Source of the DNA: Macrostomum hystrix
Lineage: Eukaryota; Animalia; Platyhelminthes
Direction of reading: 5' to 3'
Assembly (NCBI GenBank): GCA_950097015.1
Contig: CATNEN010000002.1
Coordinates: 1-64,000 of the forward strand
Length of the DNA stretch: 64,000 nucleotides
In this document: positions 1,322-61,912 of the stretch, piece by piece
How positions within the stretch are numbered: the first letter of the stretch is position 1
Layout: each line of letters starts with the position of its first letter
The notes under the pieces: model-generated
What the model saw: the letters and a program-made list of their open reading frames with translations, nothing else
Told to the model about the DNA's origin: nothing
Database searches by the model: none
Position numbers and translations under genes: made by a program

Positions 1322-2938
1322 TCACTCCATATTCAGCACCACCAGTCGCTTGTTCTGCCAGTCAGCCACCACCAGCTGCTCGCGCGCGCCTCCCGTCACC
1401 ACCGCCAGACCGCTTGGAAATGTTAATCTGCCGGCACCGCTGCCGCTCTTGCCCGGCACCCCCAGAGTCCACAGCAGCGACCCGTCGTCTGCAGCCACCG
1501 CTCGCACTAAGTGACCTTCGAATTCACTCACGAACAGGCGGCCTCTCCTGTCCACGGCCACACCCATTGGATAACCAAACTCTTTGAGGCCGCAACGCTC
1601 AGTCGGGTGCGAGGCGACCACTTGCTGGGTGTCAATGCGCACTCTGTGCACCTGCTTGTGCTTACAGTCTGTCACCAGAATGCAGTTGTCGTGAACCGCC
1701 AGGTCGCCCAGTACAGCATCAGGAAACTCAGTCAGCGTGATGACCGTCTCCATCTCGCCAGTCGCTTTGCTGAATGCAACAATTTTGTTGCCACCAGACA
1801 CAAACACGGAGGCTGCGTTGCCACCGGATTCCTGAATGCCACGAAAGCCCTCGATTTGTGGTTTGATTCGACGCACCTTTCGACCGCTCAGGTCCGTCAC
1901 TGTCACTGCGTCAACTTGAGCAATGAACAGCAGCTGACGGTCGCAGTGAAGACCCCAGATGATCATCTTCCAGTCGATGTCGCAGTGGCACCGCAGCTTC
2001 TTTGAGCCGTCCACAGACACCACCTGAAGGTGGTCCTTGTCACTACTTAATGAAAATGATGCGAAGATGCAGGGCTCAGGCAGAGCCTCACCGCCGTCAC
2101 TCGCTGACTCGGCGGCCACCACACGGCCTGAGCGGTCACCAACGAATCCGCTGGTGTCGCTGCACACCGCCAGCCAATGAACGCAGCCATCCAGCTTCAC
2201 CTCGTGACTGAACACGATCGGATCGAACAATCCCTGTGTCGCCATCGCCATCGCCTTCATTGCGTCGTCGATCTCCTGGGGTGTCGCGCTGACCTCAGCG
2301 TCTCTCCAGCCCTCAGCGGTCCCGTTCACACGAGCCAACGCTCTGCCGAACTGCTCCGACACCTGCCCCAGTCGCTCCAGCTGCTGCTCCGCTCCCAAGC
2401 TCTCCTCCAGCGACTTCTGCAGCCGATCAAAGTCCGCCTTCAAGTCATCGAGCGACAACTCCATCGACATCGTCAGCTCGACAAGCTTCGACATCTCGCC
2501 TGCAGCTTCCGCCATCGACGTCTCCTGCCTGTAGCTTCTCACATCGTCCATGTCCCGCTGCCACACACGCGCTGTCTCAATCCGAGCTATCATCGGACCT
2601 GTCAGTCGATCTTCACTCGAATCCAGGTATCTCCGCATTGTCTCATACAGCTGCTTCGCCCGTCGCAGCTGCTCCTCCATCTCGTGAATCCAATCTCCTC
2701 CACCACCTCCAGCACTGCCGCCTGCAGCTTCGGCTTGTGGGAAGGCACGCAGCTTCTCAGCGACCTTCTCCTTCAGCTTGAGGGCATCCGCCACATCAAC
2801 ACTCAGGTGTTCCGAGCACAGGTAGTGCTCGGAAAACGGACCCAGGCCGACTGCAGCTTTTTGGCAGACGACGCAGATTGGGATCACTTCAGGAGGTCCT
2901 TCGGAACTCGAGCTGTCGCTGGAGTCTCCACGCTGCAT
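1322..2938 (-). CDS. Zn-finger (CxxC-x15-CxxH) / coiled-coil / NHL-repeat beta-propeller protein, TRIM-NHL-like, copy A1 (538 aa from MQRGD)
   Basis: Uninterrupted ORF. N-terminal CVVC...CSEH, then a helical coiled-coil-like region. C-terminal canonical NHL repeats [19 protein letters not shown] and LTFPSGLAV...LVVADWQNKRLVVL. ATG at 2938 follows a polypyrimidine-CAG acceptor at 2954. Confidence 0.88.
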   Translation of the reverse strand: MQRGDSSDSSSSEGPPEVIPICVVCQKAAVGLGPFSEHYLCSEHLSVDVADALKLKEKVAEKLRAFPQAEAAGGSAGGGGGDWIHEMEEQLRRAKQLYETMRRYLDSSEDRLTGPMIARIETARVWQRDMDDVRSYRQETSMAEAAGEMSKLVELTMSMELSLDDLKADFDRLQKSLEESLGAEQQLERLGQVSEQFGRALARVNGTAEGWRDAEVSATPQEIDDAMKAMAMATQGLFDPIVFSHEVKLDGCVHWLAVCSDTSGFVGDRSGRVVAAESASDGGEALPEPCIFASFSLSSDKDHLQVVSVDGSKKLRCHCDIDWKMIIWGLHCDRQLLFIAQVDAVTVTDLSGRKVRRIKPQIEGFRGIQESGGNAASVFVSGGNKIVAFSKATGEMETVITLTEFPDAVLGDLAVHDNCILVTDCKHKQVHRVRIDTQQVVASHPTERCGLKEFGYPMGVAVDRRGRLFVSEFEGHLVRAVAADDGSLLWTLGVPGKSGSGAGRLTFPSGLAVVTGGAREQLVVADWQNKRLVVLNME

Positions 2939-2953
2939 TTTCAGATTCGAGGT

Positions 2954-2975
2954 CTGCAAAGAGAGTCGGAAAGAG
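2954..2975 (-). other. Putative 3' splice (or trans-splice) acceptor just upstream of the NHL start codon
   Basis: Minus strand ctctttccgactctctttgcag|acctcgaatctgaaaATG; conserved before all five NHL copies (ttccag in B copies). Confidence 0.55.
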
Positions 2976-3702
2976 GCCGTGTGAGTTGAAGACTGCTGCT
3001 GGAATCTGCCAGAACTCTAATATTATCTCAGTGTCAAAAATTCTCAACTTCAACTCGCTACCTCAGAAAGCTGGGAAGCAGAAAAGTTGCAGAACTGCCG
3101 TAAGCAGGCCGATGCTGAGGCTCAGGTGAGAATGAGTTTCAATCAGACAGCAGTCGGAAGCTGTGCTCAAGAGTCTGAGATGACTCTCGTGTAAGCTAGG
3201 TGTCTCAGTTAAACTCTTCTCCGTTGCCATGGAAACAGTGAGAAGCCTGATTCTGGTTGACATATCAGAACAGAATGAAATCCTTGAGTCGCTCTGCTCC
3301 GGCAGCTCAGTTTGTCGCCAAAAGACAGTGAGAGTGAAATCAGTTTTTGTTTATTCTCGGTCGAACGCGAATTCAAAATGCTTTCTGTGGCTGCGTGCAT
3401 TTCTCTGCGGCTGGGACAGAGAGGGCCGGCTCTGAGCAGCATTAAGCACAGCTGAGCACCCACCTCTGCCTCCAACTGCTCACAATGGGAACGTAGATTG
3501 GGTGAGTGTACTCAAATGCATTGTTTGTGCACTTAGCTGTGCCATCTTGAGCCCAAAGTACGACATTGTGGCTTTGCTTGTCAGACACTTTCTGACAGAT
3601 CCGAGCTGTTAGAGATGCGATCGACCTGTTAGAGTAGGGAAAAACAACAGGCCAGCAGTTCAAGACGTTAGAAAAATCTCATATTTACTTTTTTGTCTGA
3701 TA

Positions 3703-3804
3703 TTAGCCTCATCAGCTCACCTACCATTAGCCTCATCAGCTCACATTAGCTTCATGAGCTCAAATTAGCTTCATCAGCTCACATTATCCTCATCAGCTCA
3801 CATT
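3703..3804. repeat. ~19-bp minisatellite (cattagcctcatcagctca), left part
   Basis: Tandem units; the array continues at 5886-6010 after the Crypton insertion; uninterrupted at 62673-62742. Confidence 0.85.
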
Positions 3805-4024
3805 GTCAAAATCAGTCTTTATGATAATGTAATCGTCTATGGTTAAAGCATGAGCACATTCCATTTATTTCTTCACTTAAACTTCAGGATAATGATTTCG
3901 AACTCGGGATAATGGATGCCTATTTTTAGAACAAAACAGCAAACACCAACAACAAAAGAGCGCTATGGAAAGTTAATAGTGCAGTATCAATATGGCGCAA
4001 TTGTCAATATAGTGCCCAAGACCA

Positions 4025-5575
4025 TTACAGATTGCAATTGTTGAAAGTGCAGTTGTTCATAATAAAGATACTCCGACCGTTCATCTGACGACCATCAGAC
4101 ACGCTCACTGCTTCTTGCACGATGGAGCTCTGGATGCTGATGTCAGCAGGCATTGTTACTTGACCGTGGATCGCGGCGCTTTGTCCCATGTTCAACGCAC
4201 GCGACACTGCATCGCTGCATTTTTGCAGGGACTTGTCCCGTTTAACTGCCAGGTAGCGCCGGACCGTGCTCTCGGACTTTTGACCCGTGATAGCCATGAT
4301 CTCGCTCATCGAATGCCCAGCCGATTCCAGGTCACACACTCTGGTAACTCTAGAACAATTGAGCGATTGAACTGTAAATTAGACTCAATCAGACACAAGT
4401 TGAAAACATCACATGCACTTCCCCGACCAACTGACTCACCGAATGCTGTGATTGGTGTATTCCTTAGACAGCTTCGCTTTTTTGCTCAGAGCTTTTATGA
4501 AAGTCCTCAGGTAATTTATTCCTCGTTTCTGCTTCGAGCAAAATCGTCTGGTGCCTCCTGCATTCTTCAGTGGCCTGGGAAACAGTGAGTCGTTCTTCGT
4601 CTCCGTTGGTAATATAGCCATGTAGTCGTCCACAATTCCAACATCGTAGATTCTCGCCTGCTTTACGTCGATGTCACGCTTGGCTCGATTGGGATCGGCA
4701 GACTTGTTTTTGGAATTCAGTACAGGCAATGCGTAGTACGGTCTTCCATCCGAGTCTTCGCGCTTCACCAACCACTTCTTGGATTCAATCGACTCCAGAT
4801 GTTCCCTTCCTCGTTCTCCTAGGCCGTACATAACGCGAAATAGAAACTCATCCTGAGTGGTCTCTGCACTTGATCTGTCGAAATACGTCCGTAGCTTCTC
4901 CATATCACCCTCCTCGATTGGCGGATATGATCGAACCTGACCGCCGGAGTTGTGCCATTCCCTGACTTTCATTCGGAGCATTCTATTCGCTAGGACGAAT
5001 TCCTCACCATCGATAATGTTGATCGTTAATCCAGCCACCATAGTCAGAAAGCGCTGTATCCCGGCGCGGATGCACACAAGACTTGCAGGCGAGTATGGAC
5101 CGCCATCATGGCGACGTAATTGGTAGTAGTAATACCTAAGAAACTCACACATCTCAACACGACTCAATTCATGAACAGCAGCTCCATGTTCCCGAAGGAA
5201 CTGCACAAAACTGTTACCATGAGCAATCATCTGCTCACGCGTCTTGGTTGGTAGGCTCACTATTTCATCTTTCGTCATTGCCTCTTGCATATCCAAAGGA
5301 ACTAGTTTCGGCTCAGTTTCATTCTCTCCATCCTTTTCAGCTGCAGCATCATCCTCGGCCGGTAGCAGAGGCAAATCATCAGATTGATCGGTATCAGTAT
5401 CACCGCTCTCAATAAAGTGCAAGAAGTTCAAGAAGTCTTCGTTATCCTTCATGTCCTTCTGAGATGTGGAAAGTCTTGAGATCCAATTGAGTTCGCTACT
5501 AGATACGTTGGCTAAACTTTCGACAGGCAGATTGCCCCAGTTAATCGGATATGACGTCCGGTTCTCCATGGTCAA
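4025..5575 (-). CDS. Crypton-type tyrosine recombinase (DUF3504/ZMYM-KCTD1-QRICH1-like), two exons 5575-4440 and 4349-4025, ~486 aa
   Basis: Motifs YSPASLVCIRAGIQRFL, GERGREHL (Arg), SKNK (Lys), YTNHSIR (HxxR), ITGQKSESTVRRY (Tyr) and C-terminal NNCTFNNC. A 90-bp GTGAGT...TTCTAG intron (4439-4350) joins the two ORFs in frame (1461 nt total). Confidence 0.82.
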
Positions 5576-5777
5576 GCGATTGTAGCTATTTACGTTTTAT
5601 TCTCTCCTTTCTCTCTCTTCCTTTCCACCCTCTTAAGCCCCGGCCTGTTTGCAACTTCGTTGTCTATGGCCCAAACTCCAGTAAACCACGTCAGTCTTTT
5701 TGTCTGTCTCTCCTCGGTAACCCCTCTCTCCTTTCGATGCCCTTTTTGTCTATGGCCCCACTGAAATTCGACAATGC

Positions 5778-5882
5778 GGTTATTCGTAAGTGAGACTTTA
5801 GGATAATAGTCCTATGCTCACTCGTGCGCTGCGCGCACTCATGAGCCGGACTATTATCCTAAAGTCTCACTTACGAATAACC
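5778..5882. repeat. Perfect 35-bp inverted repeat with structured 35-nt loop at the Crypton end
   Basis: ggttattcgtaagtgagactttaggataatagtcc (5778-5812) is the exact reverse complement of 5848-5882; the loop can also pair (gctca/tgagc, gtgcgc/gcgcac). Confidence 0.95.
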
Positions 5883-5885
5883 TTC

Positions 5886-6010
5886 CATTATCCTCATCAG
5901 CTCACATTAGCTTCATGAGCTCACATTAGCCTCTTCAGCTCACATTAGCTTCATGAGCTCACAGTAGCCTCTTCAGCTCACATTAGCTTCATGAGCTCAC
6001 AGTAGCTTCA
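5886..6010. repeat. ~19-bp minisatellite, right part
   Basis: Same unit as 3703-3804. Confidence 0.85.
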
Positions 6011-6263
6011 ACGCCACCTGCAGGCCAGAGAAGGACTTTGGCAGTGCCCAAGTGCCCTATTCTTAGTCAATAACCTTTTGTTATTCGCTTTTATGAATAA
6101 ACAATGTCATACAACATACAACAATGACAACAACAAAATGTTTGTTGTTAAACAACAATTTTGTTGGTAACTAAATTCTACCCGAGTACACCCGTGTCTA
6201 CCAGATACACGCAACGTTTTCTTTCTGACCCTTAAATGTTTCTTCCCCAACCATGATCCCGTA

Positions 6264-8137: not shown

Positions 8138-9186
8138 CATTCTCAGAACTTACAAATTGTATTAACATTCTCAGAACTTACAAATTGTATTAACATTCTC
8201 AGAACTTACAAATTGTATTAACATTCTCAGAACTTACAAATTGTATTAACATTCTCAGAACTTACAAATTGTATTAACATTCTCAGAACTTACAAATTGT
8301 ATTAACATTCTCAGAACTTACAAATTGTATTAACATTCTCAGAACTTACAAATTGTATTATCATTCTCAGAACTTACAAATTGTATTAACATTCTCAGAA
8401 CTTACAAATTGTATTAACATTCTCAGAACTTACAAATAGTATTAACATTCTCAGAACTTACAAATAGTATTAACATTCTCAGAACTTACAAATTGTATTA
8501 ACATTCTCAGAACTTACAAATTGTATTAACATTCTCAGAACTTACAAATTGTATTAACATTCTCAGAACTTACAAATTGTATTAACATTCTCAGAACTTA
8601 CAAATTGTATTAACATTCTCAGAACTTACAAATTGTATTAACATTCTCAGAACTTACAAATTGTATTAACATTCTCAGAACTTACAAATTGTATTAACAT
8701 TCTCAGAACTTACAAATTGTATTAACATTCTCAGAACTTACAAATTGTATTATCATTCTCAGAACTTACAAATTGTATTAACATTCTCAGAACTTACAAA
8801 TTGTATTAACATTCTCAGAACTTACAAATTGTATTAACATTCTCAGAACTTACAAATTGTATTATCATTCTCAGAACTTACAAATTGTATTAACATTCTC
8901 AGAACTTACAAATTGTATTAACATTCTCAGAACTTACAAATTGTATTAACATTCTCAGAACTTACAAATTGTATTAACATTCTCAGAACTTACAAATTGT
9001 ATTATCATTCTCAGAACTTACAAATTGTATTAACATTCTCAGAACTTACAAATTGTATTAACATTCTCAGAACTTACAAATTGTATTAATATTCTCAGAA
9101 CTTACAAATTGTATTAACATTCTCAGAACTTACAAATTGTATTAACATTCTCAGAACTTACAAATTGTATTAACATTCTCAGAACT
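8138..9186. repeat. 28-bp minisatellite (cattctcagaacttacaaattgtattaa), ~37 copies
   Basis: Near-perfect head-to-tail units without spacers; only ~1.5 units at the homologous site 36024-36066. Confidence 0.97.
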
Positions 9187-9342
9187 TCTTATCCTACCAG
9201 ACTGGACATTGACTTTTAAAAATACCATCCGACGAGATGTACATTGATAGTCTAGATTCTCGTCTCCTCAGATGTACATTGATAGTCTAGATTCTCGTCT
9301 CCTCAGATGTACATCGAGAGTTTTAATCTCCTCCCTCTAGAT

Positions 9343-11245: not shown

Positions 11246-13150
11246 ACTCGATGCCTTCTCGTGTAACGGCTTTTTCGCACTCAAAGCAGGGTCCTTTTCC
11301 TTGCTCTCCTCTCGTGTCGGTCTTCTCTGTCACCGTCTTTCTCGTTCCTCCCCTTTGGCCTGGGATTCTTACGTTTCTACCGTGCGTCTGGTGATCTCCC
11401 TCTCTCTCCTCCCGGGCCTCGCTTCGCGCTCTTCTTGTTGTTTGTTTCGCTGGTTGCGAAACACAAAGTCGCATTCTCTTTGCTTCCATTGTCTCCGTCG
11501 TTCTTTTTCCTTTGCTTTCGTCTCACCTTTGCCATACTTTTAGGTGTTTGCTGATATTGCTGGTGCTGAAGACTTTTAGGCAGTATGTGCACTGGCCTGG
11601 TTGGGGTGCTCCTCGGCACGCCTTCCTGTGGTTCGTCAGGTTGCTTTGTTGTTTAAAGCTTCTCTTACACCTTTCGCATTCGAATCTCGATTCCATCCTC
11701 CTGTGTGCTAGTCTCTGGTGTTGCACTAGTCCGACCTTCGTTCGGAATCGTCTCCCACAGCCTGGCCAGTCGCATTCCTCCATTGCCTTCTGGCCGCTCC
11801 CGTCTTGTTTGTCTTTCCTTTTCTTGTCTTCTCGTTCTCCTGTCGCTGTTTTCGCTTTGCCTTTTCCTCTTCCATCATCCGCTTCGTCTCCTTCCTGCAC
11901 ACCTCTTTCCACTTCTTCCTATCCATAGCCGTCTGTTCAATCTTGTCCGCGTCCATGCCCGCACGTCGCAGCAGTCCTCTCCAGTACGTCAGAGTGGTGG
12001 CCCGCCGACTCTTCCTTTTCCTCGCTCCACTAGGGCGCTTCGGCCATCCTAGGATCACTTTCTTCGTTATCCTGTTCTCGTCCATTCGGATTACGTGTCC
12101 AATTCTCTCCAGCGTTCTTCTCGTGATCTTGACTTCCACCGGTTCTACCTCCAACATTCCTCTCACATCATGCATGTTCACGCCCTTTGCTTCCATCTGC
12201 CGCAGTCCTGGGCCACCTTTCTTGTCCATCCACACATACCTGTAGCACCTATCCATCTGTTGCTGCATTCTCTTGATTTCCGTCTTCCACCATGGTCTCG
12301 CCGCTGTTCTGTTCCTCCATCTCCGTTCTGTACTCATCGAGTGCTATTTCACCATAGCCCCACAAGGGTTGATAGCCGCATATCAGACGGTAGTGGTTCA
12401 CTTTTATTGCTGCTGTCCTTTCGCCTAACCATCGTTGGCTTCCTTGTTCGATCCAGTCTTGCGCCCACTCTCCGATTAAGAGGATTGCTGCTCGTTTGCC
12501 ATGCATTACTACTGCTTTCTCCTCGCCTTCGCCTAGCCAGAAGAAACCTTGGTCTGCGCTGGTTATCTCTGTCAGCAGCACAGCGTTCCAGTTCATCCTC
12601 GTGCTGTATGTCACTATCTCCCGAATTCTTCTCCGATTGTTCTCCCGCATAGATGCTTTCTGCACGTTCCATGTTGCTATTTTGGGGCTTCTCTTCTTTT
12701 TCTCCTCTAGTTTCTCATTTTCTTTCTTCGCTTCTGCTTCCCTCTTCTCCTCTTCCTTACGTCTTCGTCTCCGTTCTCTCCTCTGTCGTCTCACGTCATT
12801 CCGGTATTCGCGTTGCTTCTCTATGTTCCTTTTTCCGCGTTTGCTAGGTCCCGGGTTCTTCTTAACTGTCTCCAGTTTCTCTTCGATCTCTTCTTCTAGT
12901 CTTCTTACGTCCTCCACGACCTTCCTTCCTCGCTGCAGATTAGGGCGGCAGGCTTTTAAGTGTCGACTGGGGGTGCCCTGTCTCCCAGCTCCACTGTCGC
13001 AGGCCGGTCGTCCCCGCGTGCAGTGGCTGTTGCCTTCCGCCGCGGCTCCTCCCGGTCCACCTCCGGATCTTTTTGCCATTGCTGGAGTGGGGCTCAGTCC
13101 ACTCCGCGTAGCGCGCTCTCCGCTTCAAGAAAGCAGATCCTTGGGATAGC
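11246..13150 (-). mobile_element. Internally deleted RTE-like (APE-type) non-LTR retrotransposon, copy 1
   Basis: APE endonuclease N-terminus (KIATWNVQK...VLLTEI...GYQP) joined at ~12310 to the post-RT region (LERIGHVIRMDENRITKKVILG). C2H2 fingers follow (CDWPGCGRRF...HQRLAH, CERCKRSF...H). No RT domain. Confidence 0.82.
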
Positions 13151-14280: not shown

Positions 14281-14474
14281 CTCTTATAACATTCTAAAAA
14301 ACAAAACAAAAACAAATTGCAACAATGATACACTATATTGTCATATTTTATCATACCTATGCTTAATTACCATACATTTATTGACATCTTCAATACAATA
14401 GAACAAATTCTTCCTCTCTTTAAAACTTCACACACATAAACAAAAGAGCCTATTGACTGAACCACTCCTGCAAA

Positions 14475-17027: not shown

Positions 17028-17205
17028 CACCTGTTAGATATGGCTGTCACCTGTTAGATATGGCTGTCACCTGTTAGATATGGCTGTCACCTGTTAGATA
17101 TGGCTGTCACCTGTTAGATATGGCTGTCACCTGTTAGATATGGCTGTCACCTGTTAGATATGGCTGTCACCTGTTAGATATGGCTGTCACCTGTTAGATA
17201 TGGCT
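17028..17205. repeat. 20-bp minisatellite (cacctgttagatatggctgt), ~9 copies
   Basis: Tandem units; ~4 copies at 43824-43899. Confidence 0.92.
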
Positions 17206-17326
17206 CTAAATAAAAAAATCGAATGCAGCAGAACCAGTGACACCTACTTGCTGAATTCCAGCTGCATCAAAATAAGAATTTTAGCAGCTCAGACTTAGGT
17301 TCAGAGACAAATCAGAAACCAGTTCT

Positions 17327-49451: not shown

Positions 49452-49526
49452 GCGGCTGGACTCGTGGTGGAATCGAACTCAGGGACCTCGGCGCGAGACG
49501 CGAACGCGTTAACCGCTCTGCCACCG
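49452..49526 (-). mobile_element. tRNA-derived SINE head (duplicate of 24020)
   Basis: A-box and B-box as in the first unit. Confidence 0.68.
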
Positions 49527-52500
49527 ACCCAAACGTTCTTAGAATTCAAGTAGAAGTTGGTCATTCGTGTGGGCTACTCAAATTGGATAGTTCCCATTCG
49601 TCATTTATCCCCAGACCAGAACCGCCGCCATTGGTTGGCTGGGTAGATGCAGTTGCTAAGCAAACCAACCTGATAAAAGTTGCTCCCAGCGCTGCAAACA
49701 AAGATTTGGCTGCCACACAAAAATTCTCCCCCGCGTACTTCCGGCCCAGCAACAGAGCCGAGCCAAGCCGAGCAAATCAAACGACAGATAATTGACGAGT
49801 TCGCCATTGTCAGTCGGCGTCGACAGGTAAGGCCAAGCAGACTTGTGGAATTAACGATGGATAGGGCAAAAACACTGGGCCAACATGCTGGGAGGAAAAG
49901 TTTTGGAAAGTACTTTAGGGAAAGGAGAATTAAGAGGGGATGGATTAGAAAGGAATAAAGAGAAGTGAGAGTAAGAAGATGTGAAATGAGTGGAAGAAAT
50001 GAGAGAATAGGAGAGGGGAGAATGGAAGAGGGGAGAATGGGAGAGGGGAGAATGGGAGAGGGGAGAATGGGAGAGGGGAGAAAAGTAGAGCAGAGGATGG
50101 AAGAGGGGATAATTGGAAAGGGGAGAATAGGAGAGGGGAGAATGGGATGGGAGAGGGGAGAATGGGATGGGAGAGGGGAGAATGGGAAAGGGGGAGAATG
50201 GAAGAGGGGAGAATGGGAGAGGGAAGAATGGGAGAGGGAAGAATGGGAGAGGGGAGAATTGGAGAGGGGAGAATAGGAGAGGGGAGAATAGGAGAGTGGA
50301 AAATGGGAGAGTGGAGAACGGGAGAGGGGAGAATGGGATGGAAGATGGGAGAATTGGAGAGGGGAGAATGTGAGAGGGAAAATTGGAAAGGGGAGAATGA
50401 AAGAGGAAGAATGAGAATGGGAGACGGAAGAAATATGATGGGATAAAATTGGAAGATAGGAGGAGATGATGAATTGGAAAAAGAGGAGAGAAGAGAGGAT
50501 TGAATGGTTATAAATGAGAGGTTAGTCAAAGGAGCAAATGATTATGCCGGTAGAAATTTTGCCTTGCCGGAAGCAAGACCCAGTAATAGTAGAGCTTGTT
50601 GCTCTGTTCCAAAGAAGATTATAGGCTTAGTAGGCCTGGCAATATCGAAACAAAAAAATCAACGGCAATTTTTCGCCCGAATTTCATTCTGAATCAAGAT
50701 TAAAAGATAAAGGAAAGACACGAACATTGCTCATTAAATAATATTATTCTATAGTTTCGTGTCCTCCATTTTGGGTCAACAGCCTTCTGTGTGCCTGTTC
50801 TATGTGCCTGTATGCCTGTCTGTCTGTTCTAATCATTAAATAATTATTACGAACTAAGAACCGAAAATACGGATAGAATTATATTTTAATGCAATCTAAA
50901 ATAGGAAAAGCAATGTAATATTAGCTCCGCTATTTCTTAATATTTAATGCCAGAATTATTCGTGTTTCTTAGAAACATCATTCATGATCGATCAGATTCG
51001 ATCAGTTCAATACTGCGTCCGCAATTTTCTCACGCAGTGAATTTGTCTCTACCTAATTTAGTAACTATCAGGCCGTGTCTCACTCCCGACTCCGGTGAAT
51101 CAAATGTTCTCTCACGATACGTGCTCACGATCCGATAAAGATAACAAAATAGAAACAAAAGTATACATATCGACTGAGCAGGAATTTGTTAGAAAGAAAG
51201 CCAAATTTTTGCCAGCCAAGTTTACTGCTGATTCGATCGTATTTTCCAAGCGATAGAAGAACATAGGACAACAGATATGGAGAGGGGACAGGAGATAAGT
51301 ACTGGGGACAGGAGATAAGGACTGGGGACAAGAGATAAGGAGAGGGGACAGGAGATGAGGAGTGGGGGGGCATGGGATAAGGAGAAGGGAGACAGGGAGA
51401 GGGAGGTAGTGAGAGAGATTCGGAGAGTGAGACAGGGAGGGAGAGATAAAGAATGGGAGATAAAGAGAAGGAGAGAGGGATAGGGAGATAGGGAAGAGGA
51501 GATATGCCCAGTTTTTCTGTCAAATGCGCGACTCCAGAAAATGATTTTCTTCAAATCTTCTTTTTCGAATTTTCCCGGTAATGAAGCCTCAGAATGCCCA
51601 TACATTAGAACCTCGTCTCAACTAACATTCGAAACATCGCCTAGCCATTTTTTATGGACGAAGACACGAAGACCCAAAACCAAACTGACTGACGTTCGCA
51701 TTCTCATCGATTGGAAGCCCAGCTGTCGAGTGATTCCGAAATGGAAAAGTACATTGATTGTCAATACTGGGTCATGCTGTTGCGTTTTCAATTAGAACTC
51801 GGTGGGAAATCATAGGACGACAAGCAGGGTAGAAATTACAGAATCAAGGGGGTAGATACGTAGCTGTAGGATCAGGGGGTAGTCAGATGAAGGATCAGGG
51901 GTACACAGATGAAGGACCAGAGGGTACACAGATGAAGGACCAGGGGATAGTCAGATGAAGGACCAGAGGGTACACAGATGAAGGACCAGAGGGTACACAG
52001 ATGAAGGACCAGAGGGTACACAGATGAAGGACCAGAGGGTACACAGATGAAGTACCAGAGGGTACACAGATGAAGGATCAGAGGTAGACAGCTGAAGAAT
52101 CTGGGGTTGAACAGTCGGTAAACAGTGACTTAACAGTCTTACAGACATAATTGCATCGTCCAATCACTAAAATGTTTTGACTGACAGCTAAAATCGATGC
52201 TTGGCAGTTAGCTGTTGCACATTCTGACAATACACCGTAGTCACTATTATATATGAAGATGCTAAATTCGTGTCTTCGCCCAGTTGAATGTGGTCTAGTT
52301 CCAGAATGCACCTCCAATTAAGTCTTTGTCCTGAAAGACTTACCTGATAAAAACCTATTGTGTTCTATTCAGAGCAGGTTCATTGTGCCAGGCTATAGCT
52401 TTGTTCCAACTTAGAAACAGGTTTTAAAAGTACTTTAGCAGATTCCGTCTAGCTAGCAGCGGACAGCAGAACTTAGCTATTAGTGTGTGTATCCACCTGT

Positions 52501-52777
52501 ATCCACCGATAATCACTATCTGCATTGCATTGATTGCAGATAAGCGTTTGTACTTTTCTCATGGGACGCAGGCTCATGTTATAGGACACTGGATCCGTCC
52601 ACTACTTACTAGCAGCAACGGAGATTGTAGTACATTTCGGCATGAGTTTCAGACTTCAGAATGACCAAGAGGTCGGGAGTTCGATTCTCAGCCAAATGAG
52701 AACTATTTGCGTCCTTCATAAGTATACCAAACTGCCTAATGAAATCAGTAGAGCACGTAGGTAGGGGGTTAGTCAGG

Positions 52778-52860
52778 TGGGTGGTGAATGGCAGAGAACG
52801 GTCTAACGCGTTTGCCTCTCGCAGCAAGGTCCCTGAGCTCGATTCCGCGGCGAGGCCACA
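52778..52860 (+). mobile_element. tRNA-derived SINE head (duplicate of 27493)
   Basis: A-box and B-box as in the first unit. Confidence 0.65.
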
Positions 52861-53167
52861 TTTTATTTGTGGTGCAGCCGGCGGAGAGAAGGCTTGGGGG
52901 CTTGTCATGCAACTACGCCCTTGAGTGCCAACCACCAAGTGACCTGTTTCAGCGAGTGCCTGCGTACAGTCTCCAAGTTCGTGTGTGCTCAGGAGTCAGC
53001 GAACTGGGGCAGAATGCATAGTGTCACCAAATTATGTGCCAGCAGCCCTCTTGCAGTTATTATTATCATTATTTTATTATTATTATTATGGTTCAGGCGT
53101 ACAATTCTATCTATCTAGCTGTTACCGCTACCATTACTGCTCTCTTGCAGACCATAGTGTAGAGTCA

Positions 53168-54826
53168 ATGGACACGCCGCGATTCAAGGATCTCTCCGAT
53201 GTGCTGCAGCTGCGCAAGCAGGGCCAGAGCATGTCCACCTCCGTACAGGCCACAACCACCCTGTGGCTGACTACAGTCTCCGTGTTGGGCATCGTTGGCA
53301 ACGCCCTGGTGATCATGTTCTTTTCCAGAAGCCTGAAAGATCTGCCCCAGAATGTCTACGTGATCGCTCTGGCAGCCCTTGACTTGGTCGTCTGCGCGGT
53401 GGTTATTCCGTCGACAATCTATCAGGACGTCTGGCTGGCTTCTAGCAGCGACCTGGGCTGCAAGCTGTTCAACATTCTCCGCTACTCTCTGGTTCCATCG
53501 TCTGCATTTTTGCTGTGCCTCATCGCCGTTGATCGCTTCGTCATCATCTGCTTCGTGCCGGGCATCCAGTCGACAAGGAAGAACTCGCTGCTGTACATCG
53601 GCCTGGTTCTGGTGCTGGGCTTCGCTCTCGGTGTTCCTGGCGGACTGACAACCGGAGCCAGCGTGCGCATCACCGTGGATGCCGCAGTCAGCAAGTTCAA
53701 TGGCGACTTCAGCGTCTCTCACTGTACCTCGGATTTCAGCATAATCTCAGAGTCGGTCTACAAGGTCTATCGCACAATGCTCACCGCAATTTTCTCCGTC
53801 ATGCTGCTCCTCCTGGTGTTTTTCTACGCCAACATTTTCTGCTTTGTCCGCAAGCGCCAGCAACGCTGGGCAAAGTCGCGCAGCTACTTGGCCTCCAAGA
53901 TGGAGCGAAGCGGCGGCAACACTGCCGAGCTCGGCGGCACCAAGGGTCGACGGTGGCTGCTGAACCGCCGCTGGAGCGCAGGCTATGGCGTCGGCGGCGT
54001 CGGCGGGCGCAACACGCGGCGTCTCCTGTCTGTGGGCCGTCTGGACGAGGTGACGGAAGTGACGAGCTGCACTGAGGCCAGGCGAGCGTCAGTGAACTTG
54101 CCACGCTTCGACCAGCCTGGCCAGTCATCATCCGAATGCCTTGAGACCGACATAGACGAAGCCCTGGCCGCCTCCTCACCGGTGAAAAATGCTTTCCAGA
54201 AGCGAATTTCGGAGGTTTCAGAACAGACCAGCTCAGCTGGCCAGGCTGCTGAGATCGAGGGTGCTGACGCCATCGAGCTCAGCGTGATGCTCAGTCCCAG
54301 CATGACGGACTGCGATTCGCAGTCGCGTCCCAACCGCATCAACTCGCTGGCCAGTGAGCACCTGACTCAGGCCCGACAGGACTTGGCCGAGCGCACGCGG
54401 AAGCGGCCCCACATCAAGACCGCCAAGGTGCTCGGCGTCATCACCTTCTTCTACGTGTTGTCCTACCTGCCATTCTTTCTAGTTTACAACTTTAACAAAT
54501 CGGTGAGCGAAGGCGTCACGGGCCGTTGGATGGTAGAGACGGGCAACTTCTCGGCAGGCAAGTCCATCGACGCCTGGCCAGAGAGGCACAACAGCAGCGC
54601 GTGGGCATTCAGCTTCGACTCAGCTGTCGCCGGCGATGATGTGAGCGGTGGCGTCGGTGGCGGCAGTGACAGTGAAGCGTCGGTCTATCACCAGGCGGTG
54701 AAGGTGATGTTCTATTTTTACTTCATCAATCATGGAGCCAATCCGCTGATCTATGGCTGCATGAACACCTATTTCAAGCAGCAGGTGTGCGCCCTCATTG
54801 GCTCGCTGAGGTGTCGAAGGAGGTGA
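53168..54826 (+). CDS. Class A GPCR, copy 2 (552 aa)
   Basis: Same 7TM motifs; 5 visible amino-acid differences from copy 1. Confidence 0.92.
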   Translation: MDTPRFKDLSDVLQLRKQGQSMSTSVQATTTLWLTTVSVLGIVGNALVIMFFSRSLKDLPQNVYVIALAALDLVVCAVVIPSTIYQDVWLASSSDLGCKLFNILRYSLVPSSAFLLCLIAVDRFVIICFVPGIQSTRKNSLLYIGLVLVLGFALGVPGGLTTGASVRITVDAAVSKFNGDFSVSHCTSDFSIISESVYKVYRTMLTAIFSVMLLLLVFFYANIFCFVRKRQQRWAKSRSYLASKMERSGGNTAELGGTKGRRWLLNRRWSAGYGVGGVGGRNTRRLLSVGRLDEVTEVTSCTEARRASVNLPRFDQPGQSSSECLETDIDEALAASSPVKNAFQKRISEVSEQTSSAGQAAEIEGADAIELSVMLSPSMTDCDSQSRPNRINSLASEHLTQARQDLAERTRKRPHIKTAKVLGVITFFYVLSYLPFFLVYNFNKSVSEGVTGRWMVETGNFSAGKSIDAWPERHNSSAWAFSFDSAVAGDDVSGGVGGGSDSEASVYHQAVKVMFYFYFINHGANPLIYGCMNTYFKQQVCALIGSLRCRRR

Positions 54827-55129
54827 AAAATAAGGAACTCGGAATTAGCTTTCATTCCTGTGAATCTTTGCTTGAAACACTTTTCTTTTCAAACTGTAGT
54901 TGAATATTTTATAAGTCTTGCATCATGCTAAAATCGTCTTTTTGTCGAGCTGAAGCGAAATACGAGTAAATACGAGTAAATACGAGTTTGATAAAAAAAT
55001 CTTCATAAAGTTATTCGTATTTTGAGACTAGGGGTCAAGAGATTTCTGTGAATATTTATTTTTTCATTTAAACAAAGCCATTTTTGTAGTGTACGAGCGC
55101 TATTGTCTAGGCCATGGAGGTAGCAAACT

Positions 55130-58100
55130 ATCCTTCCTATCCTATCCTATCCTTCCTTCCTCCTTCCTCCGTCTTCCTTCCTTCTCCTCACTCCTTCCTC
55201 CTTCCTCCGTCTTCCTTCCTTCTCCTCACTCCTTCCTCCTTCTCCCTCCTCCTTCCTCCTCCTTCCTCCTTGCTTCCTTCTCCTTCCTCCTCTTTCCTAC
55301 TCCTTCCTCCTTCTTCCTTCCTTCCTCCTTCCTCCTCCTTCCTCCTTCCCCCTTCCTCCATCCTCCCTCCTCCTTCCTCCTCCTTCTCCTTCCTCCTTTC
55401 TTCCTCATTCCTTCCTCCTCCTTCCTTCCTCCTCCTTCCTCCTTCCTTCCTCTTTCCTCCTTCCTTCCTCCTTCCTCCTTCCTTTCTCCTTCCCCCTTCC
55501 TCCTTCCTTCTCCTTCCTCCTCCTTCCTCCTTCCTTTCTCCTTCCCCCTTCCTCCTTCCTCCCTCCTCCTCCTTCCTCCTTCCTTTCTCCTTCCACCTTC
55601 CTCCTTCCTCCCTCCTCCTCCTTCCTCCCTCCTTCTTCCTCCTTCCTTCCTCCTTCCCCCTTCCTCCTCCTTCCTCCTTCCTCCTCCTTCCTCCCTCCTT
55701 CCTCCTTCCTCCTTCCTTCCTCCTTCCCCCTTCCACCTTCCTTCCTCCTTCCTCCTTCCTCCTTCCTCCTCCTTCCTTCCTTTCTCCTTCCTTCCTCCTT
55801 CTTCCTCCTTCCTCCTTCCTCCTTCCTCCTTCCTTCCTCCTTCCTCCTCCTTCCTCCTTCCTCCTTCCTCCTTCTTCCTCCTACTTCCTCCTCCTTCCTC
55901 CTTCCTCCTTCCTCCTTCCTCCTTCCTCCTCCTTCCTCCTTCCTCCTTCCTTCCTCCTTCCTTCCTCCTCCTTCCTCCTTCCTCCTTCCTCCTCCCTCCT
56001 TCTTCCTTCCTTTCTCCTTCCCCCTTCCTCCTTCCTCCTCCTTCCTCCTCCTTCCTCCTTCCTCCTTCCTCCTTCCTCCTTCCTCCTCCTTCCTCCTTCC
56101 TCCTTCCTCCTTCCTCCTCCTTCCTCCTTCCTCCTTCCTCCTTCCTCCTTTCTTCCTTCTCCTTCCTCCTCCTTCCTCCTTCCTCCTTCCTTCCTCCTTC
56201 CTCCTTCTTTCCTCCTCCTTCCTCCTCCTTCCTTCCTCCTCCTTCCTCCTCCTTCCTCCTTCCTCCTTCCTCCTTCCTTCCTCCTCCTTCCTCCTCCTTC
56301 CTCCTCCTTCCTCCTTCCTCCTTCCTCCTCCTTCCTCCTTCCTCCTTCCTCCTTCCTCCTTCCTCCTTCCTTCCTCCTCCTTCCTCCTCCTTCTTCCTCC
56401 TTTCTCCTTCCTCCTTTCTCCTTCCTCCTTCCTCCTCCTTCCTCCTTCCTCCTTCCTTCCTCCTTCCTCCTTCCTCCTTCCTCCTTCTTCTTTCCTCCCT
56501 CCTCCTCCTTCTCCTCCCTCCTTCCTCCTTCTTCTTTCCTCCCTCCTCCTCCTTCTCCTCCCTCCTTCCTCCTTCCTCCTTCCTCCTCCTTCCTCCTTCC
56601 TCCTTCCTCCTTCCTCCTTCCTTCCTCCTCCTTCCTCCTTCCTCCTTCCTCCATTCTTCCTCCTCCTTCCTCCTTCCTCCTTCCTCCTCCTTCCTCCTTC
56701 CTCCTTCCTCCTTCCTTCCTCCTTCCTCCTTCCTCCTTCCTCCTTCTTTCCTTCTCCTTCCTCCTCCTTCCTCCTCCTTCTTCCTCCTTTCTCCTTCCTC
56801 CTTTCTCCTTCCTCCTTCCTCCTTCTTCCTCCTTCCTCCTTCCTTCCTCCTTCCTCCTTCCTCCTTCCTCCTTCCTCCTTTCTTCCTCCTCCTTCCTCCT
56901 CCTTCCTCCTTCCTCCTTCCTTCCTCCTTCCTTCCTCCTCCTTCCTCCTCCTTCCTCCTTCCTTCCTCCTTCCTTCCTCCTCCTTCCTCCTCCTTCCTCC
57001 TTCCTCCTTCCTCCTCCTTCCTCCTTCCTCCTTCCTCCTCCTTCCTCCTTCCTCCTTCCTCCTTCCTCCTCCTTCCTCCTTCCTCCTTCCTCCTTCCTCC
57101 TTCCTTCCTCTTTCCCCTTCATCCATCCTCCCTCCTCCTTCCTCCTCCTTCTCCTTCCTCCTTCCTCCTTCCTCCTCCTTCCTCCTTCCTCCTTCCTCCT
57201 TCCTCCTCCTTCCTCCTTCCTCCTTCCTCCTTCCTCCTTCCTCCTTCCTCCTTCCTCCTTCCTCCTCCCTCCTTCCTCCTTCCTCCTCCTTCCTTCTCCT
57301 TCCTTCCTCCTTCCTCCTTCCTCCTTTCCCCTTCCTCCTTCCTCCTTCCTCCTCCTTTCTCCTTCCTCCTTCCTCCTCCTTCCTACTCCCTCCTCCTTCC
57401 TCCTTCCTCCTTCCTCCTCCTTCCTCCTTCCTCCTTCCTCCTTCCTTCTTCCTTCCTTCCTCCTTCCTCCTTCCTTCCTCCTCCTTCCTCCTTCCTCCTT
57501 CCTCCTCCTTCCTCCTTCCTCCTTCCTCCTTCCTTCCTCCTTCCTCCTTCCTCCTTCCTCCTTCCTCCATCCTTCCTCCTCCTTCCTCCTCCTTCTTCCT
57601 CCTTTCCCCTTCCTCCTTCCTCCTTCCTCCTCCTTCCTCCTTCCTCCTCCTTCCTCCTTCCTCCTTCCTCCTCCCTCCTTCCTCCTCCTTCCTCCTTCCT
57701 CCTTCCTCCTTCCTCCTTCCTCCTCCCTCCTTCCTCCTTCCTCCTTCCTTCCTCCTTCCTTCCTCCGCCTTCCTCCTCCTTCCTCCTTCCTCCTTTCCCC
57801 TTCCTCCTTCCTCCTTCCTCCTCCTTTCTCCTTCCTCCTTCCTTAATTCTCTTTCTTCCTTCCTCCTCCTTTCTCCTTCCTCCTTCCTTCCTTCTCTTTC
57901 CTCCTCCTTCCTCCATCCTCCTCCATCCTCCTTCCTCCTTCCTCCTTCCTCCTCCTTCCTCCTTCCTCCTTCCTCCTTCCTCCTTCCTTCCTCCTTCCCC
58001 CTTCATCCATCCTCCCCCCTCCTTCCTCCTCCTTCTCCTTCCTCCTTCCTCCTTCCTCCTCCTTCCTCCTTCCTCCTTCCTTCCTCCTCCTTCCTCCTTC

Positions 58101-59975
58101 CTCATTCCTCCTCCTTCCTCCTTCCTTCCTCCTCCTTCCTCCTCCTTCCTCCTACCTCCTTCCTTCCTCCTTCCTTCCTCCTCCTTCCTCCTCCTTCCTC
58201 CTTCCTCCTTCCTCCTCCTTCCTCCTTCCTCCTCCTTCCTCCTTCCTCCTTCCTCCTTCCTCCTTCCTCCTTCCTCCTCCTTCCTCCTTCCTCCTTCCTC
58301 CTTCCTCCTTCCTCCTCCCTCCTTCCTCCTTCCTCCTTCCTCCTTCCTCCTCCCTCCTTCCTCCTTCCTCCTCCTTCCTCCTTCCTCCTTCCTTCCTTCT
58401 CCTTCCTCCTCCTTCCTCCTTCCTCCTTCCTTCCTCCTTCCTACTTCTTTCCTCCTCCTTCCTCCTCCTTCCTTCCTCCTCCTTCCTCCTCCTTCCTCCT
58501 TCCTCCTTCCTTCCTTCTCTTTCCTCCTTCCTCCTCCTTCCTCCTTCCTCCTCCTTCCTCCTTCCTCCTTCCTCCTTCCTCCTTCCTTCCTCCTCCTTTC
58601 TCCTTCCTCCTTCCTTCCTTCTCCTTCCTCCTCCTTCCTTCCTCCTCCTTCCTCCTTCCTCCTTCCTCCTTCCTCCTTCTTCCTCATTCCTCCTTCCTCC
58701 TTCCTCCTTCCTTTCTCCTTCCTTCCTCCTCCTTCCTCCTCCTTTCTCCTTCCTCCTCCTCCTTCCTCCTTCCTCCTTCCCCCTTCCTCCTTCCTCCTTC
58801 CTCCTCCTTCCTCCTTCCTCCTTCCTTCCTTCTCCTTCCTCCTCCTTTCTCCTTCCTCCTTCCTTCCTTCTCTTTCCTCCTTCCTTCCCTCTTTCCTCCT
58901 CCTTTCTCCTTCCTCCTTCCTCCTTCCTCCTTCCTCCTTCCACCTTCCTCCTTCCTCCTTCCTCCTTCCTCCTTCCTCCTACCTCCTTCCTCCTTCCTCC
59001 TCCCTCCTTCCTCCTTCCTCCTTCCTTCCTCCTCCTTCCTCCTCCTTCTTCCTCCTTTCTCCTTCCTCCTTTCTCCTTCCTCCTTCCTCCTCCTTCCTCC
59101 TTCCTCCTTCCTTCCTCCTTCCTCCTTCCTCCTTCCTCCTTCCTCCTTCCTTCCTCCTCCTTCCTCCTCCTTCCTCCTTCCTCCTTCCTTCCTCCTTCCT
59201 TCCTCCTCCTTCCTCCTCCTTCCTCCTCCTTCCTCCTCCTTCCTCCTTCCTCCTTCCTCCTCCTTCCTCCTTCCTCCTTCCTCCTTCCTCCTTCCTCCTC
59301 CTTCCTCCTTCCTCCATCCTCCTTCCTCCTTCCTCCTCCCTCCTTCCTCCTTCCTCCTTCCTTCCTCCTTCCTTCCTCCTCCTTCCTCCTCCTTCCTCCT
59401 TCCTCCTTCCCCCTTCCTCCTTCCTCCTTCCTCCTCCTTCCTCCTTCCTCCTTCCTTCCTTCTCCTTCCTCCTCCTTTCTCCTTCCTCCTTCCTTCCTTC
59501 TCTTTCCTCCTTCCTCCTCCTTTCTCCTTCCTCCTTCCTCCTCATTCCTTCCTTCTCCTCCCTCCTTCCTCCTTCCTCGTCCTTCCTTCTTCCTCCTTCC
59601 TCCTTCCTCCTTCCTCCTTCCTCCTTCCTCCTTCCTCCTCCTTCCTTCCTTTCTCCTTCCTTCCTCCTTCTTCCTCCTTCCTCCTTCCTCCTTCCTCCTT
59701 CCTTCCTCCTTCCTTCCTCCTCCTTCCTCCTTCCTCCTTCCTCCTTCCTCCTTCTTCCTCCTACTTCCTCCTCCTTCCTCCTTCCTCCTTCCTCCTTCCT
59801 CCTTCCTCCTCCTTCCTCCTTCCCCCTTCCTTCCTCCTTCCTTCCTCCTCCTTCCTCCTTCCTCCTTCCTCCTCCCTCCTTCCTCCTCCTTCCTCCTTCC
59901 TCCTTCCTCCTCCTTCCTACTCCCTCCTCCTTCCTACTCCCTCCTCCTTCCTACTTCCTCTTCCTCCTTCCTCCA
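55130..59975. repeat. ~4.85 kb (TTCCTCC)n-like tract
   Basis: Pure C/T tract; replaces the ~550 bp unique segment plus ~1 kb tract of the first unit. Confidence 0.97.
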
Positions 59976-60292
59976 TTCGAAAAAACATTCCAAAAAACAA
60001 ATAACAAATGGCAAAATGTAACAATGACACTTTTCTTTCCTTCTTCCTCTTTTCTCGAAAAACATTCCAAAAAACAAATAACAAAAACAAATAACAAAAG
60101 GCTACAATGATACGCTATATTGTCATATTATATCATACCCATGCCTAATTACCACATACGTCTATTGACATATTCAATCAAATACTACTAATTGTTCCTC
60201 TCGTTAAAACTTCAAACGCATAAATAAAAGACCCTATTCACCGAAACACTCCTGCAAAGTCTCTGCTTCATCTACGCTCACTCACTGACGAC

Positions 60293-61912
60293 TCACTCCA
60301 TATTCAGCACCACCAGTCGCTTGTTCACATAGTCAGCCACCACCAGCTGCTCGCGCGCGCCTCCCGTCACCACCGCCAGACCGCATGGACCATTGAATAT
60401 GCCGTCACCGCTGCCGCTCTCGCCCGGCACCCCCAGAGTCCACAGCAGCGACCCGTCGTCGGCAGCCACCGCTCGCACTGAGTCACCACTCCACTCACTC
60501 ACGAACAGGCGGCCTCTCCTGTCCACGGCCACACCCATTGGCCCAGCAAACTCTTTGAGGCCGCAACGCTCAGTCGGGTGCGAGGCGACCACCTGCTGGG
60601 TGTCAATGCGCACTCTGTGCACCTGCTTCTGCTTCCAGTCTGTCACCAGAATGCAGTTGTCGTGAATCGCCAGGTTGCGCAGATCAGCATCAGGAAACTC
60701 ATTCAGCGTGATGACCGTCTCCATCTCGCCAGTCGCTTTGCTGAATGCAACAATTTTGTTGCCACCAGACACAAACACGGAGGCTGCGTTGCCGCCGATT
60801 CCCTCAATGGCACGAAAGCCCTTGATTTGTGGTTTGATTCGACGCATCTTTCGACCGCTCAGGTCCGTCACTGTCACTGCGTCAACTTGAGCAATGAACA
60901 GCAGCTGACGGTCGCCGTGAAGACCCCAGATGTCCCTCTTCCAGTCGATGTCGCAGTGGCACCGCAGCTTCTTCGAGCCGTCCACAGACACCACCTGAAG
61001 GTGATTCTTGCCATCGAATGATGAAAATGATGCGAAGATGCAGGGCTGAGGCAGAGCCTCACCGCCGTCACTCGCTGACTCGGCGGCCACCACACGGCCT
61101 GAGCGGTCCCCAACGAATCCGCTGGTGTCGCTGCACACCGCCAGCCACTTAACAAGACCATCCAGCTTCACCTCGTGACTGAACACAATCGGATCGAACA
61201 ATGCCTGTCTCGCCATCGCCATCGCCTTAAATGCGTCGTCGATCTCCTTGGGTGTCGCGCTGACCTCAGCGTCTCTCCAGCCCTCACCAGTCCACACGTT
61301 CACACGAGCCAACGCTCTGCCGAACTGCTCCGACACCTGCCCCAGTCGCTCCAGCTGCTGCTCCGCTCCCAAGCTCTCCTCCAGCGACTTCTGCAGCCGA
61401 TCAAAGTCCGCCTTCAAGTCATCGAGCGACAACTCCATCGCCATCGTCAGCTCGACAAGCTTCGACATCTCGCCTGCAGCTTCCGCCATCGACGTCTCCT
61501 GCCTGTAGCTTCTCACATCGTCCATGTCCCGCTGCCACACACGCGCTGTCTCAATCCGAGCTATCATCGGACCTGTCAGTCGATCTTCACTCGAATCCAG
61601 GTATCTCCGCATTGTCTCATACAGCTGCTTCGCCCGTCGCAGCTGCTCCTCCATCTCGTGAATCCAATCTCCTCCACCACCTCCTGCACTGCCACCTGCA
61701 GCTTCGGCTTGAGGAAAGGCACGCAGCTTCTCAGCGACCTTCTCCTTCAGCTTGAGGGCATCCGCCACATCAACACTCAGGTGTTCCGAGCACAGGTAGC
61801 GCTCGGAGAACGGACCCAGGCCGACTGCAGCTTTTTGGCAGACGACGCAGATTGGAATCACTTCAGGAGGTCCTTCGGAACTCGAGCTGTCGCTGGAGTC
61901 TCCACGCTGCAT
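60293..61912 (-). CDS. Zn-finger / coiled-coil / NHL propeller protein, copy A5 (539 aa)
   Basis: Intact ORF; NHL repeats [19 protein letters not shown] and IFNGPCGLAV...ADYVNKRL. Confidence 0.88.
   Translation of the reverse strand: MQRGDSSDSSSSEGPPEVIPICVVCQKAAVGLGPFSERYLCSEHLSVDVADALKLKEKVAEKLRAFPQAEAAGGSAGGGGGDWIHEMEEQLRRAKQLYETMRRYLDSSEDRLTGPMIARIETARVWQRDMDDVRSYRQETSMAEAAGEMSKLVELTMAMELSLDDLKADFDRLQKSLEESLGAEQQLERLGQVSEQFGRALARVNVWTGEGWRDAEVSATPKEIDDAFKAMAMARQALFDPIVFSHEVKLDGLVKWLAVCSDTSGFVGDRSGRVVAAESASDGGEALPQPCIFASFSSFDGKNHLQVVSVDGSKKLRCHCDIDWKRDIWGLHGDRQLLFIAQVDAVTVTDLSGRKMRRIKPQIKGFRAIEGIGGNAASVFVSGGNKIVAFSKATGEMETVITLNEFPDADLRNLAIHDNCILVTDWKQKQVHRVRIDTQQVVASHPTERCGLKEFAGPMGVAVDRRGRLFVSEWSGDSVRAVAADDGSLLWTLGVPGESGSGDGIFNGPCGLAVVTGGAREQLVVADYVNKRLVVLNME

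Follow-up and report, generated by a model that had tools for sequence, protein, structure and literature searches.

Hypervariable loops on one predicted propeller face in a tandem array of NHL genes of Macrostomum hystrix

Variable propellers and a flatworm gene array

In Podospora anserina, a fungus, the HNWD/NWD genes (het-d, het-e and het-r) encode fungal NLRs with WD40 propellers (Paoletti et al. 2007, PMC1805685; Chevanne et al. 2010, PMC2873952). By analogy, this family appears to be the closest described system to the tandem array of NHL-propeller genes analysed here, which lies in the first 64,000 nucleotides of contig CATNEN010000002.1 of the flatworm Macrostomum hystrix (GenBank assembly GCA_950097015.1; this whole stretch is referred to as the window); the SPRY loops of TRIM5 and finTRIM proteins would be the animal analogue. 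Both the fungal and the flatworm genes form a multigene family whose beta-propeller scaffold is homogenised by concerted evolution and sequence exchange, with diversifying selection at few positions per blade that cluster on the (in Macrostomum, putative) interaction surface, and both encode intracellular proteins as a germline-encoded repertoire. The fungal WD40 propeller is joined to NACHT and death-effector domains, whereas the Macrostomum propeller is of the NHL type and lacks such domains. The fungal system further differs in the exchange of whole repeats within and between genes, in unstable repeat numbers and in repeat-induced point mutation (RIP), and allorecognition has been demonstrated for it, whereas in the Macrostomum family this would be one of several candidate roles. 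Overall, we consider it probable that gene conversion and diversifying selection build a germline repertoire of binding surfaces in this array, the functional part of that reading being the least certain.

In TRIM5alpha and the fish finTRIM/btr proteins, surface loops of the B30.2 (PRY-SPRY) domain are under strong positive selection, and the genes have expanded in tandem. Like these proteins, the Macrostomum family combines a constant N-terminal module that would oligomerise (B-box/coiled coil in the TRIM proteins) with a C-terminal recognition domain. TRIM5alpha and finTRIM proteins possess both a bona fide B-box and a RING E3 domain, and SPRY is their recognition domain, whereas the Macrostomum proteins have no RING and no B-box detectable by Pfam, and recognition, if any, would be via NHL.

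The six-bladed NHL fold and the order of zinc module, predicted coiled coil and NHL domain are shared with the canonical TRIM-NHL proteins (Brat, LIN-41/TRIM71, TRIM2/3, Thin/TRIM32 and Mei-P26). These are single-copy developmental regulators, and the top face of their propeller is the RNA- or ligand-binding face, which to our knowledge is conserved among orthologs in all TRIM-NHL proteins studied. In the Macrostomum family, in contrast, the corresponding face is the least conserved, the genes lie in arrays, the RING and filamin domains are absent, and a B-box is not recognisable. The RING-less B-box-NHL expansions of molluscs and echinoderms are similar in length and architecture and lineage-specific in Lophotrochozoa, and expansion of a B-box orthogroup has been reported in bivalves (PMC8382680). 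However, they have no detectable sequence homology to the Macrostomum family beyond the generic NHL repeat, and our literature search found no report of face-restricted hypervariability in them.

Variation, selection and exchange in the propeller

The window holds five homologous intronless gene copies of about 540 amino acids each, all on the minus strand, of which four are intact and one is a pseudogene. The original prediction, made from the sequence alone, had described them as TRIM-NHL-like genes with a near-constant scaffold and ten hypervariable propeller patches; the true ATG of the A copies lies seven codons inside the TTG-started open reading frames (ORFs) that it had used.

1322-2938, minus strand: A1, intact intronless gene, 538 aa, with CxxC...CxxH zinc knuckle, predicted coiled coil and NHL propeller (ORF and alignments; Pfam NHL 31 bits, cut-off 20)
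14664-16283, minus strand: B2, intact, 539 aa, the copy used as reference in the structure model and for residue numbers
14667-15560, minus strand: propeller-coding part of B2 (residues 242-539), with all hypervariable patches inside
31492-33117, minus strand: A3, intact, 541 aa (ORF and alignments)
41414-43026, minus strand: P4, pseudogene and duplicate of B2, with a 1-bp deletion near 42147 and, at aligned codon 432, an in-frame TAG
60293-61912, minus strand: A5, intact, 539 aa (ORF and alignments)

All ten patches were found exactly as originally written. Among the four intact copies, 5 residues vary in the N-terminal 200 codons, which bears out the near-constant scaffold, versus 59 in the propeller of about 298 codons. 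The differences between copies form tight multi-nucleotide clusters within otherwise near-identical DNA. At codons with variable amino acids, 76 of 238 differing codon pairs differ at two or three bases, versus 0 of 15 in the N-terminal half, so that the earlier description of multi-nucleotide codon swaps in near-identical DNA also held.

To place these residues on the fold, loops were numbered from the DSSP strand list of an AlphaFold2 model, in which alternate loops lie on opposite propeller faces (hereafter even and odd), and the strand register was set by the Pfam NHL match together with the small-residue inner strands (GVAVD type). Variable residues occupied 37 of 89 positions in even loops, compared to 3 of 59 in odd loops and 18 of 149 in strands (Fisher p = 3.6e-7). 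By propeller convention, the even loops would be the d-a and b-c loops of the top, ligand-binding face, and judged by strand topology the claimed confinement of the hypervariable sites to these loops was upheld. The N-terminal half, the beta-strands and the a-b and c-d loops are near-identical among the copies. In Macrostomum lignano, 49 of 87 even-loop residues and 15 of 59 odd-loop residues were variable. Columns under selection (see below) were enriched in Tyr (20x), Trp (3.4x) and Lys (3.1x) as well as Asn, Cys and Arg, an amino-acid make-up that appears to be that of a binding surface. Lys and Arg made up 20% of the hypervariable columns versus 11% for Asp and Glu, which is compatible with RNA binding and not diagnostic of it.

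Selection was assessed in several ways. By the Nei-Gojobori method (NG86), the ratio of non-synonymous to synonymous divergence (dN/dS) was about 0.1 in the N-terminal 200 codons and 0.7-2.2 over the whole propeller. A difference in age between the two gene halves was ruled out by their silent divergence (pS, the proportion of synonymous differences, at amino-acid-invariant codons), which was 0.045 in the N-terminal half versus 0.063 in the propeller and was thus, as the original prediction implied, not correspondingly raised. Silent variants hitch-hiking beside the patches were not in excess at the adjacent amino-acid-invariant codons (p = 0.43). As a guard against circular site choice, hypervariable columns were defined in nine M. 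lignano paralogs (at least 1.5 bits) and then measured in the window copies: the 27 columns hypervariable in M. lignano had a dN of 0.53 and a dS of 0.23, compared to a dN of 0.04 and a dS of 0.06 at the other 265 codons. Site models M0, M1a and M2a were fitted with a custom likelihood implementation (F3x4 frequencies, FastTree topology, fixed relative branch lengths, free scale). Read as supporting figures only, the likelihood-ratio tests (LRTs) of M2a versus M1a were 109 for the window copies (p ~ 2e-24; 8.8% of codons at omega 20.6) and 250 for the M. lignano copies (10.7% of codons at omega ~10). Even loops contain all 13 window codons with a posterior > 0.95 and 17 of the 24 selected M. 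lignano codons, and 10 of 11 comparable selected sites are common to both species (odds ratio 190, p = 2e-11). Divergence at patch codons was about 10 times that of the neutral flanks. We thus confirmed the claim of a dN/dS well above 1 at loop sites: roughly 25-30 codons in the d-a/b-c loops undergo amino-acid replacement at 10-20 times the synonymous rate.

The copies are also recombinant mosaics, a property absent from the original prediction, and short-tract gene conversion acts beside diversifying selection as a large part of the mechanism. Over codons 456-461, B2 and A3 are identical for 18 nt, and P4, the duplicate of B2, carries a different allele; at codons 428 and 431, sites 9 nt apart, all four allele combinations occur (a four-gamete violation). 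Many patches group the copies differently, with whole patch alleles common to non-orthologous copies. Among informative site pairs, 44% were incompatible with a single tree, nearby pairs less so than distant ones; a permutation test of the pairwise homoplasy index (PHI) type was significant in the window (p = 0.0002) and in M. lignano (p = 0.007), and the Hudson-Kaplan minimum number of recombination events (Rm) among the five copies was 16. The propellers of A1 and A3 differ at 7% of their bases, while the G-protein-coupled receptor (GPCR) gene that was duplicated along with them has a dS of 0.0045. In-situ point mutation since the duplication is therefore insufficient, and exchange with other family members contributed. 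The Macrostomum family thus resembles HNWD in both respects, with omega > 1 sites clustered in the d-a/b-c loops and exchange among its members.

The closest proteins to the window copies come from M. lignano (53-61% identity), in which nine paralogs vary at the same positions; BOX15_Mlig016838g1, 028814g1 and 004830g1 are among the homologs in that species. A similar array is found at 280-334 kb on M. lignano NIVC01000200.1, where 54 kb hold about eight copies or fragments, pseudogenes included. One gene model in that array spans 34 kb, joins parts of different members and corresponds to no single ORF from the locus; this annotation is probably chimeric, running across the tandem array. A third relative is represented by three environmental contigs of about 2 kb from the Joint Genome Institute (JGI; samples 3300040775, 3300040776 and 3300040779), which encode a 533-aa member. 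Their length matches a full mRNA, and gene callers had annotated only the last 418 aa. Among the three contigs, even loops hold 44 non-synonymous differences, odd loops 0 and the N-terminal half 4, and 7 of 10 sites selected in both the window and M. lignano also vary among them. The hypervariable positions are therefore the same in three species, and the loop pattern first described in M. hystrix recurs independently in M. lignano and in the third relative. When 1.8 billion representatives were searched with a profile, full-length matches outside the window came only from M. lignano and the three JGI contigs, the remaining matches being generic NHL repeats of giant proteins, which is best explained by a family specific to the Macrostomum lineage.

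Protein family, surroundings and transcription

NHL (Pfam PF01436; 31 and 24.5 bits versus a cut-off of 20) was the sole significant Pfam domain. Only about 20 Ser-rich residues precede a single conserved CxxC-x15-CxxH motif at the N-terminus, which provides four ligands (C22, C25, C41 and H44 in B2 numbering); a B-box zinc finger has two zinc sites with 7-8 ligands. The family proteins matched no Pfam RING family at E <= 1 or at E <= 10, no zf-B_box at E <= 10 and no Pfam NACHT/NB-ARC domain (the hallmark of fungal NLR/STAND proteins), and they showed no signal peptide. Source databases label the M. lignano homologs 'hypothetical / B box-type domain-containing'. Compared by language-model features, RING-less B-box+NHL proteins from molluscs and echinoderms make up the nearest ESM-Atlas clusters (score 0.92-0.93, 186-191 features in common), and these clusters carry PF00643.

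The AlphaFold2 model was built from an alignment of 14 family members with B2 as the reference. The propeller (residues 241-539) was modelled with confidence (predicted local distance difference test score, pLDDT, 80-96), and long helices at 42-64, 81-146 and 149-205 with low confidence (pLDDT 30-65). The best Foldseek matches in the PDB were the NHL domains of Thin, TRIM71, TRIM2/3, LIN-41 and Mei-P26 (TMt 0.73-0.78, E 1e-15 to 1e-13; 6fq3 and 8j72 among them), and the predicted fold is a six-bladed NHL propeller. The observations are best explained by cytoplasmic proteins of about 540 aa that combine a four-ligand zinc knuckle, a predicted coiled coil of about 160 residues and the NHL propeller. 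The designation 'TRIM-NHL-like' was thus right about the propeller, which Pfam, AlphaFold2 and Foldseek all recovered, and does not extend to membership of the TRIM family: because neither a RING nor a recognisable B-box was found, the family appears TRIM-NHL-like in layout and not TRIM.

By self-BLAST, the tandem unit consists of an A-type gene, a B-type gene and a 7tm_1 GPCR gene, with a period of about 29-30 kb and about 2.2 units in the window. Non-coding parts are 95-98% identical between units. The A-type and B-type copies have only the coding sequence and about 345 nt upstream in common, and their flanks farther out are unrelated (self-BLAST and upstream identities). The unit and the elements next to the NHL genes are the following:

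7373-29859: body of tandem unit 1 (B-type NHL gene and 7tm_1 GPCR gene), duplicated at 35272-55130 (self-BLAST)
16284-16628, minus strand: upstream block of B2, the ~345-nt block common to A- and B-type copies (self-BLAST limits and upstream identities)
2939-3288, 33118-33466, 43027-43371 and 61913-62260: blocks equivalent to the B2 upstream block
17327-17747, plus strand: diverged, frameshifted N-terminal family fragment, 45% identical to residues 22-175, head-to-head with B2 (tblastn)
43969-44431, plus strand: second diverged, frameshifted N-terminal fragment (zinc knuckle and coiled-coil half only), head-to-head with P4 (tblastn)
27700-29541 and 52985-54826, plus strand: rhodopsin-type 7tm_1 GPCR gene, single exon with a long third loop, duplicated along with the unit

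The two GPCR copies differ at 7 of 1842 bases (99.6% identity), and the pair looks much more recent than the unit's NHL genes. A Crypton-like insertion (3798-6132) is present in unit 1 only and contains a 379-aa ORF (4436-5575, minus strand) with a weak QRICH1-domain match. Repeats in the window are:

19-1300, 12960-14300, 30376-31470, 40222-41150 and 55089-60110: homopurine/homopyrimidine arrays
8138-9187: tandem array of a 28-bp unit, copies 98-99% identical
18619-19550: tandem array of a ~12/24-bp unit
~17040-17215: tandem array of a 20-bp unit in nine copies, ~760-930 nt upstream of the B2 ATG

A near-pure homopurine/homopyrimidine array of 1-5 kb lies beyond the poly(A) signal of every NHL copy, and the one at 56-60 kb has a GC skew of -0.997. 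The long but spurious entries of the ORF list arise from these arrays. Tracts of this kind can be recombinogenic. As a conserved feature of the family the arrays were rejected, since none was found downstream of the M. lignano homologs.

Public sequencing runs were available as assembler contigs, not reads. Over 2 kb, the best DNA-flagged run yielded 196 pieces that were short and very deep, which is expected when a family has many copies and its assembly graph branches at the patches. Of the 39 variant places with the best support in the public-run contigs, 23 are in even loops and 2 in odd loops; a further 9 are in strands, and for 8 of these 9 the window copies differ at the codon as well. 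Contigs of the DNA-flagged run extend upstream of the gene. RNA-flagged contigs from related organisms end 2-16 nt upstream of the ATG, at a 'tttccag' acceptor-like site that in the B2 upstream block lies 16 nt before the ATG, and contigs of an unclassified 2020 run from the same organism end about 170 nt upstream of it; these contig ends would fit mature mRNAs. The loose 20-nt 5' end of an RNA-flagged contig, sought as an upstream exon, had no match in the window. A genome-guided transcriptome (PMC5730564) is the source of the M. lignano gene models, which suggests expression of the homologs.

Competing explanations and possible function

In the mechanism that we propose, duplication and short-tract gene conversion would homogenise the scaffold and shuffle loop patches among the members of the array, and diversifying selection would generate new patch variants and shield them from homogenisation. 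The outcome would be a germline-encoded repertoire of differing binding surfaces on one oligomerising scaffold. Its function, the least certain step, may be to recognise intracellular ligands that evolve fast, such as RNA or proteins of viruses or transposons, with an output that would be RING-independent, for example sequestration, translational repression or the recruitment of partners via the constant N-terminal half. Both the output and the ligands, be they RNA or protein of viruses or transposons or else allogeneic or reproductive factors, are speculative.

Several points weigh against this reading. The face assignment comes from strand topology and order, not from three-dimensional coordinates. 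Recombination, clearly present in the family, inflates site-model LRTs, and our custom M1a/M2a fit kept relative branch lengths fixed. Synonymous differences are raised at the hypervariable codons too (pS ~0.2 versus 0.06 elsewhere), and because of this part of the patch diversity may be old or imported rather than newly selected. The other M. lignano subfamilies consist only of pairs at least 99% identical, plus one pair at 94% with evenly spread differences, and are uninformative. The lack of a RING or other effector domain in Pfam searches leaves the output mechanism unaccounted for, and nothing in the neighbourhood within the window (GPCR, Crypton, repeats) is indicative of immunity.

The silence of the neighbourhood on immunity would also suit an alternative that keeps the same evolutionary mechanism and assigns it a role in reproduction or sexual conflict (e.g. 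regulation specific to the germline or gametes of a hermaphrodite in which sperm competition is intense) or in allorecognition, rather than in defence against pathogens or transposons. The canonical TRIM-NHL proteins Mei-P26, NHL-2 and LIN-41 act in germline and stem cells, and such NHL domains are the structural neighbours of this family. However, proteins that lack a signal peptide are unlikely to contact the molecules of a mating partner directly, and large tandem repertoires with Tyr/Trp/Lys-rich hypervariable surfaces are more typical of the recognition of diverse non-self; we regard this alternative as rather unlikely.

The main rival on mechanism, which the data weaken, is that old patch diversity escapes homogenisation with little or no ongoing positive selection: conversion tracts would stop at mismatches, the rest of the gene would be homogenised, and the dN/dS would be an artefact of a reset silent clock. 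Gene conversion is demonstrable here, the raised pS of the hypervariable codons (0.2 versus 0.06) is what such patches would show, and the 7% difference between the A1 and A3 propellers beside a receptor pair 99.6% identical points the same way. Escape without selection, however, would not be expected only at non-synonymous changes, on one face and at the same residues in three species; the amino-acid-invariant codons beside the patches lack a silent excess (p = 0.43), and the ORFs and the propeller core are still under purifying selection. We therefore judge this account improbable.

A dedicated mutator or a templated (cassette-type or somatic) diversification aimed at the loop codons would account for the sharp-edged multi-nucleotide patches. 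Yet tblastn of the window returned no donor cassettes, only the five copies and the two N-terminal fragments, the patch alleles are fixed germline differences common to several copies in the assembly, and neither a reverse transcriptase nor a deaminase partner was seen, which makes it very improbable. Relaxed constraint, by which the loops would be unconstrained surface residues in redundant duplicates drifting towards pseudogenes (one of the five window copies is a pseudogene, and broken copies occur in the M. lignano arrays too), is largely refuted and scarcely credible, as neutral drift caps omega at 1 whereas M2a gave omega 10-20 (LRTs of 109 and 250 over M1a), loops of the opposite face are nearly invariant (3 of 59), and patch codons diverged about 10 times as much as neutral flanks.

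Our preferred reading of the locus thus remains a repertoire of binding surfaces shaped by conversion and diversifying selection. A more specific version of it is held tentatively, as one possibility: an intracellular recognition repertoire of Macrostomum, made up of dozens of RING-less NHL proteins with patches created by selection and recombined by micro-gene-conversion, which would act as allorecognition determinants or as variable proteins that sense or restrict viruses or transposons. A literature search found no paper on the family, on hypervariable NHL domains or joining Macrostomum with NHL, and no animal family described in the searchable papers uses an NHL propeller as a hypervariable recognition module. 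The M. lignano gene identifiers were not found in those supplements of PMC5730564 that were searched. The signal is unusually clean, with one face, the same sites in three species and an omega of about 10-20 beside a near-frozen scaffold. Flatworm innate recognition is poorly understood, and if the specific version is true, the family would be the first NHL-based animal counterpart of TRIM5/finTRIM or of the fungal HNWD receptors. As the family is present in M. lignano, a model with transgenesis and RNA interference (RNAi), its ligand and function are directly testable, and in compact, natural form the locus illustrates how a combinatorial repertoire is built jointly by gene conversion and diversifying selection.

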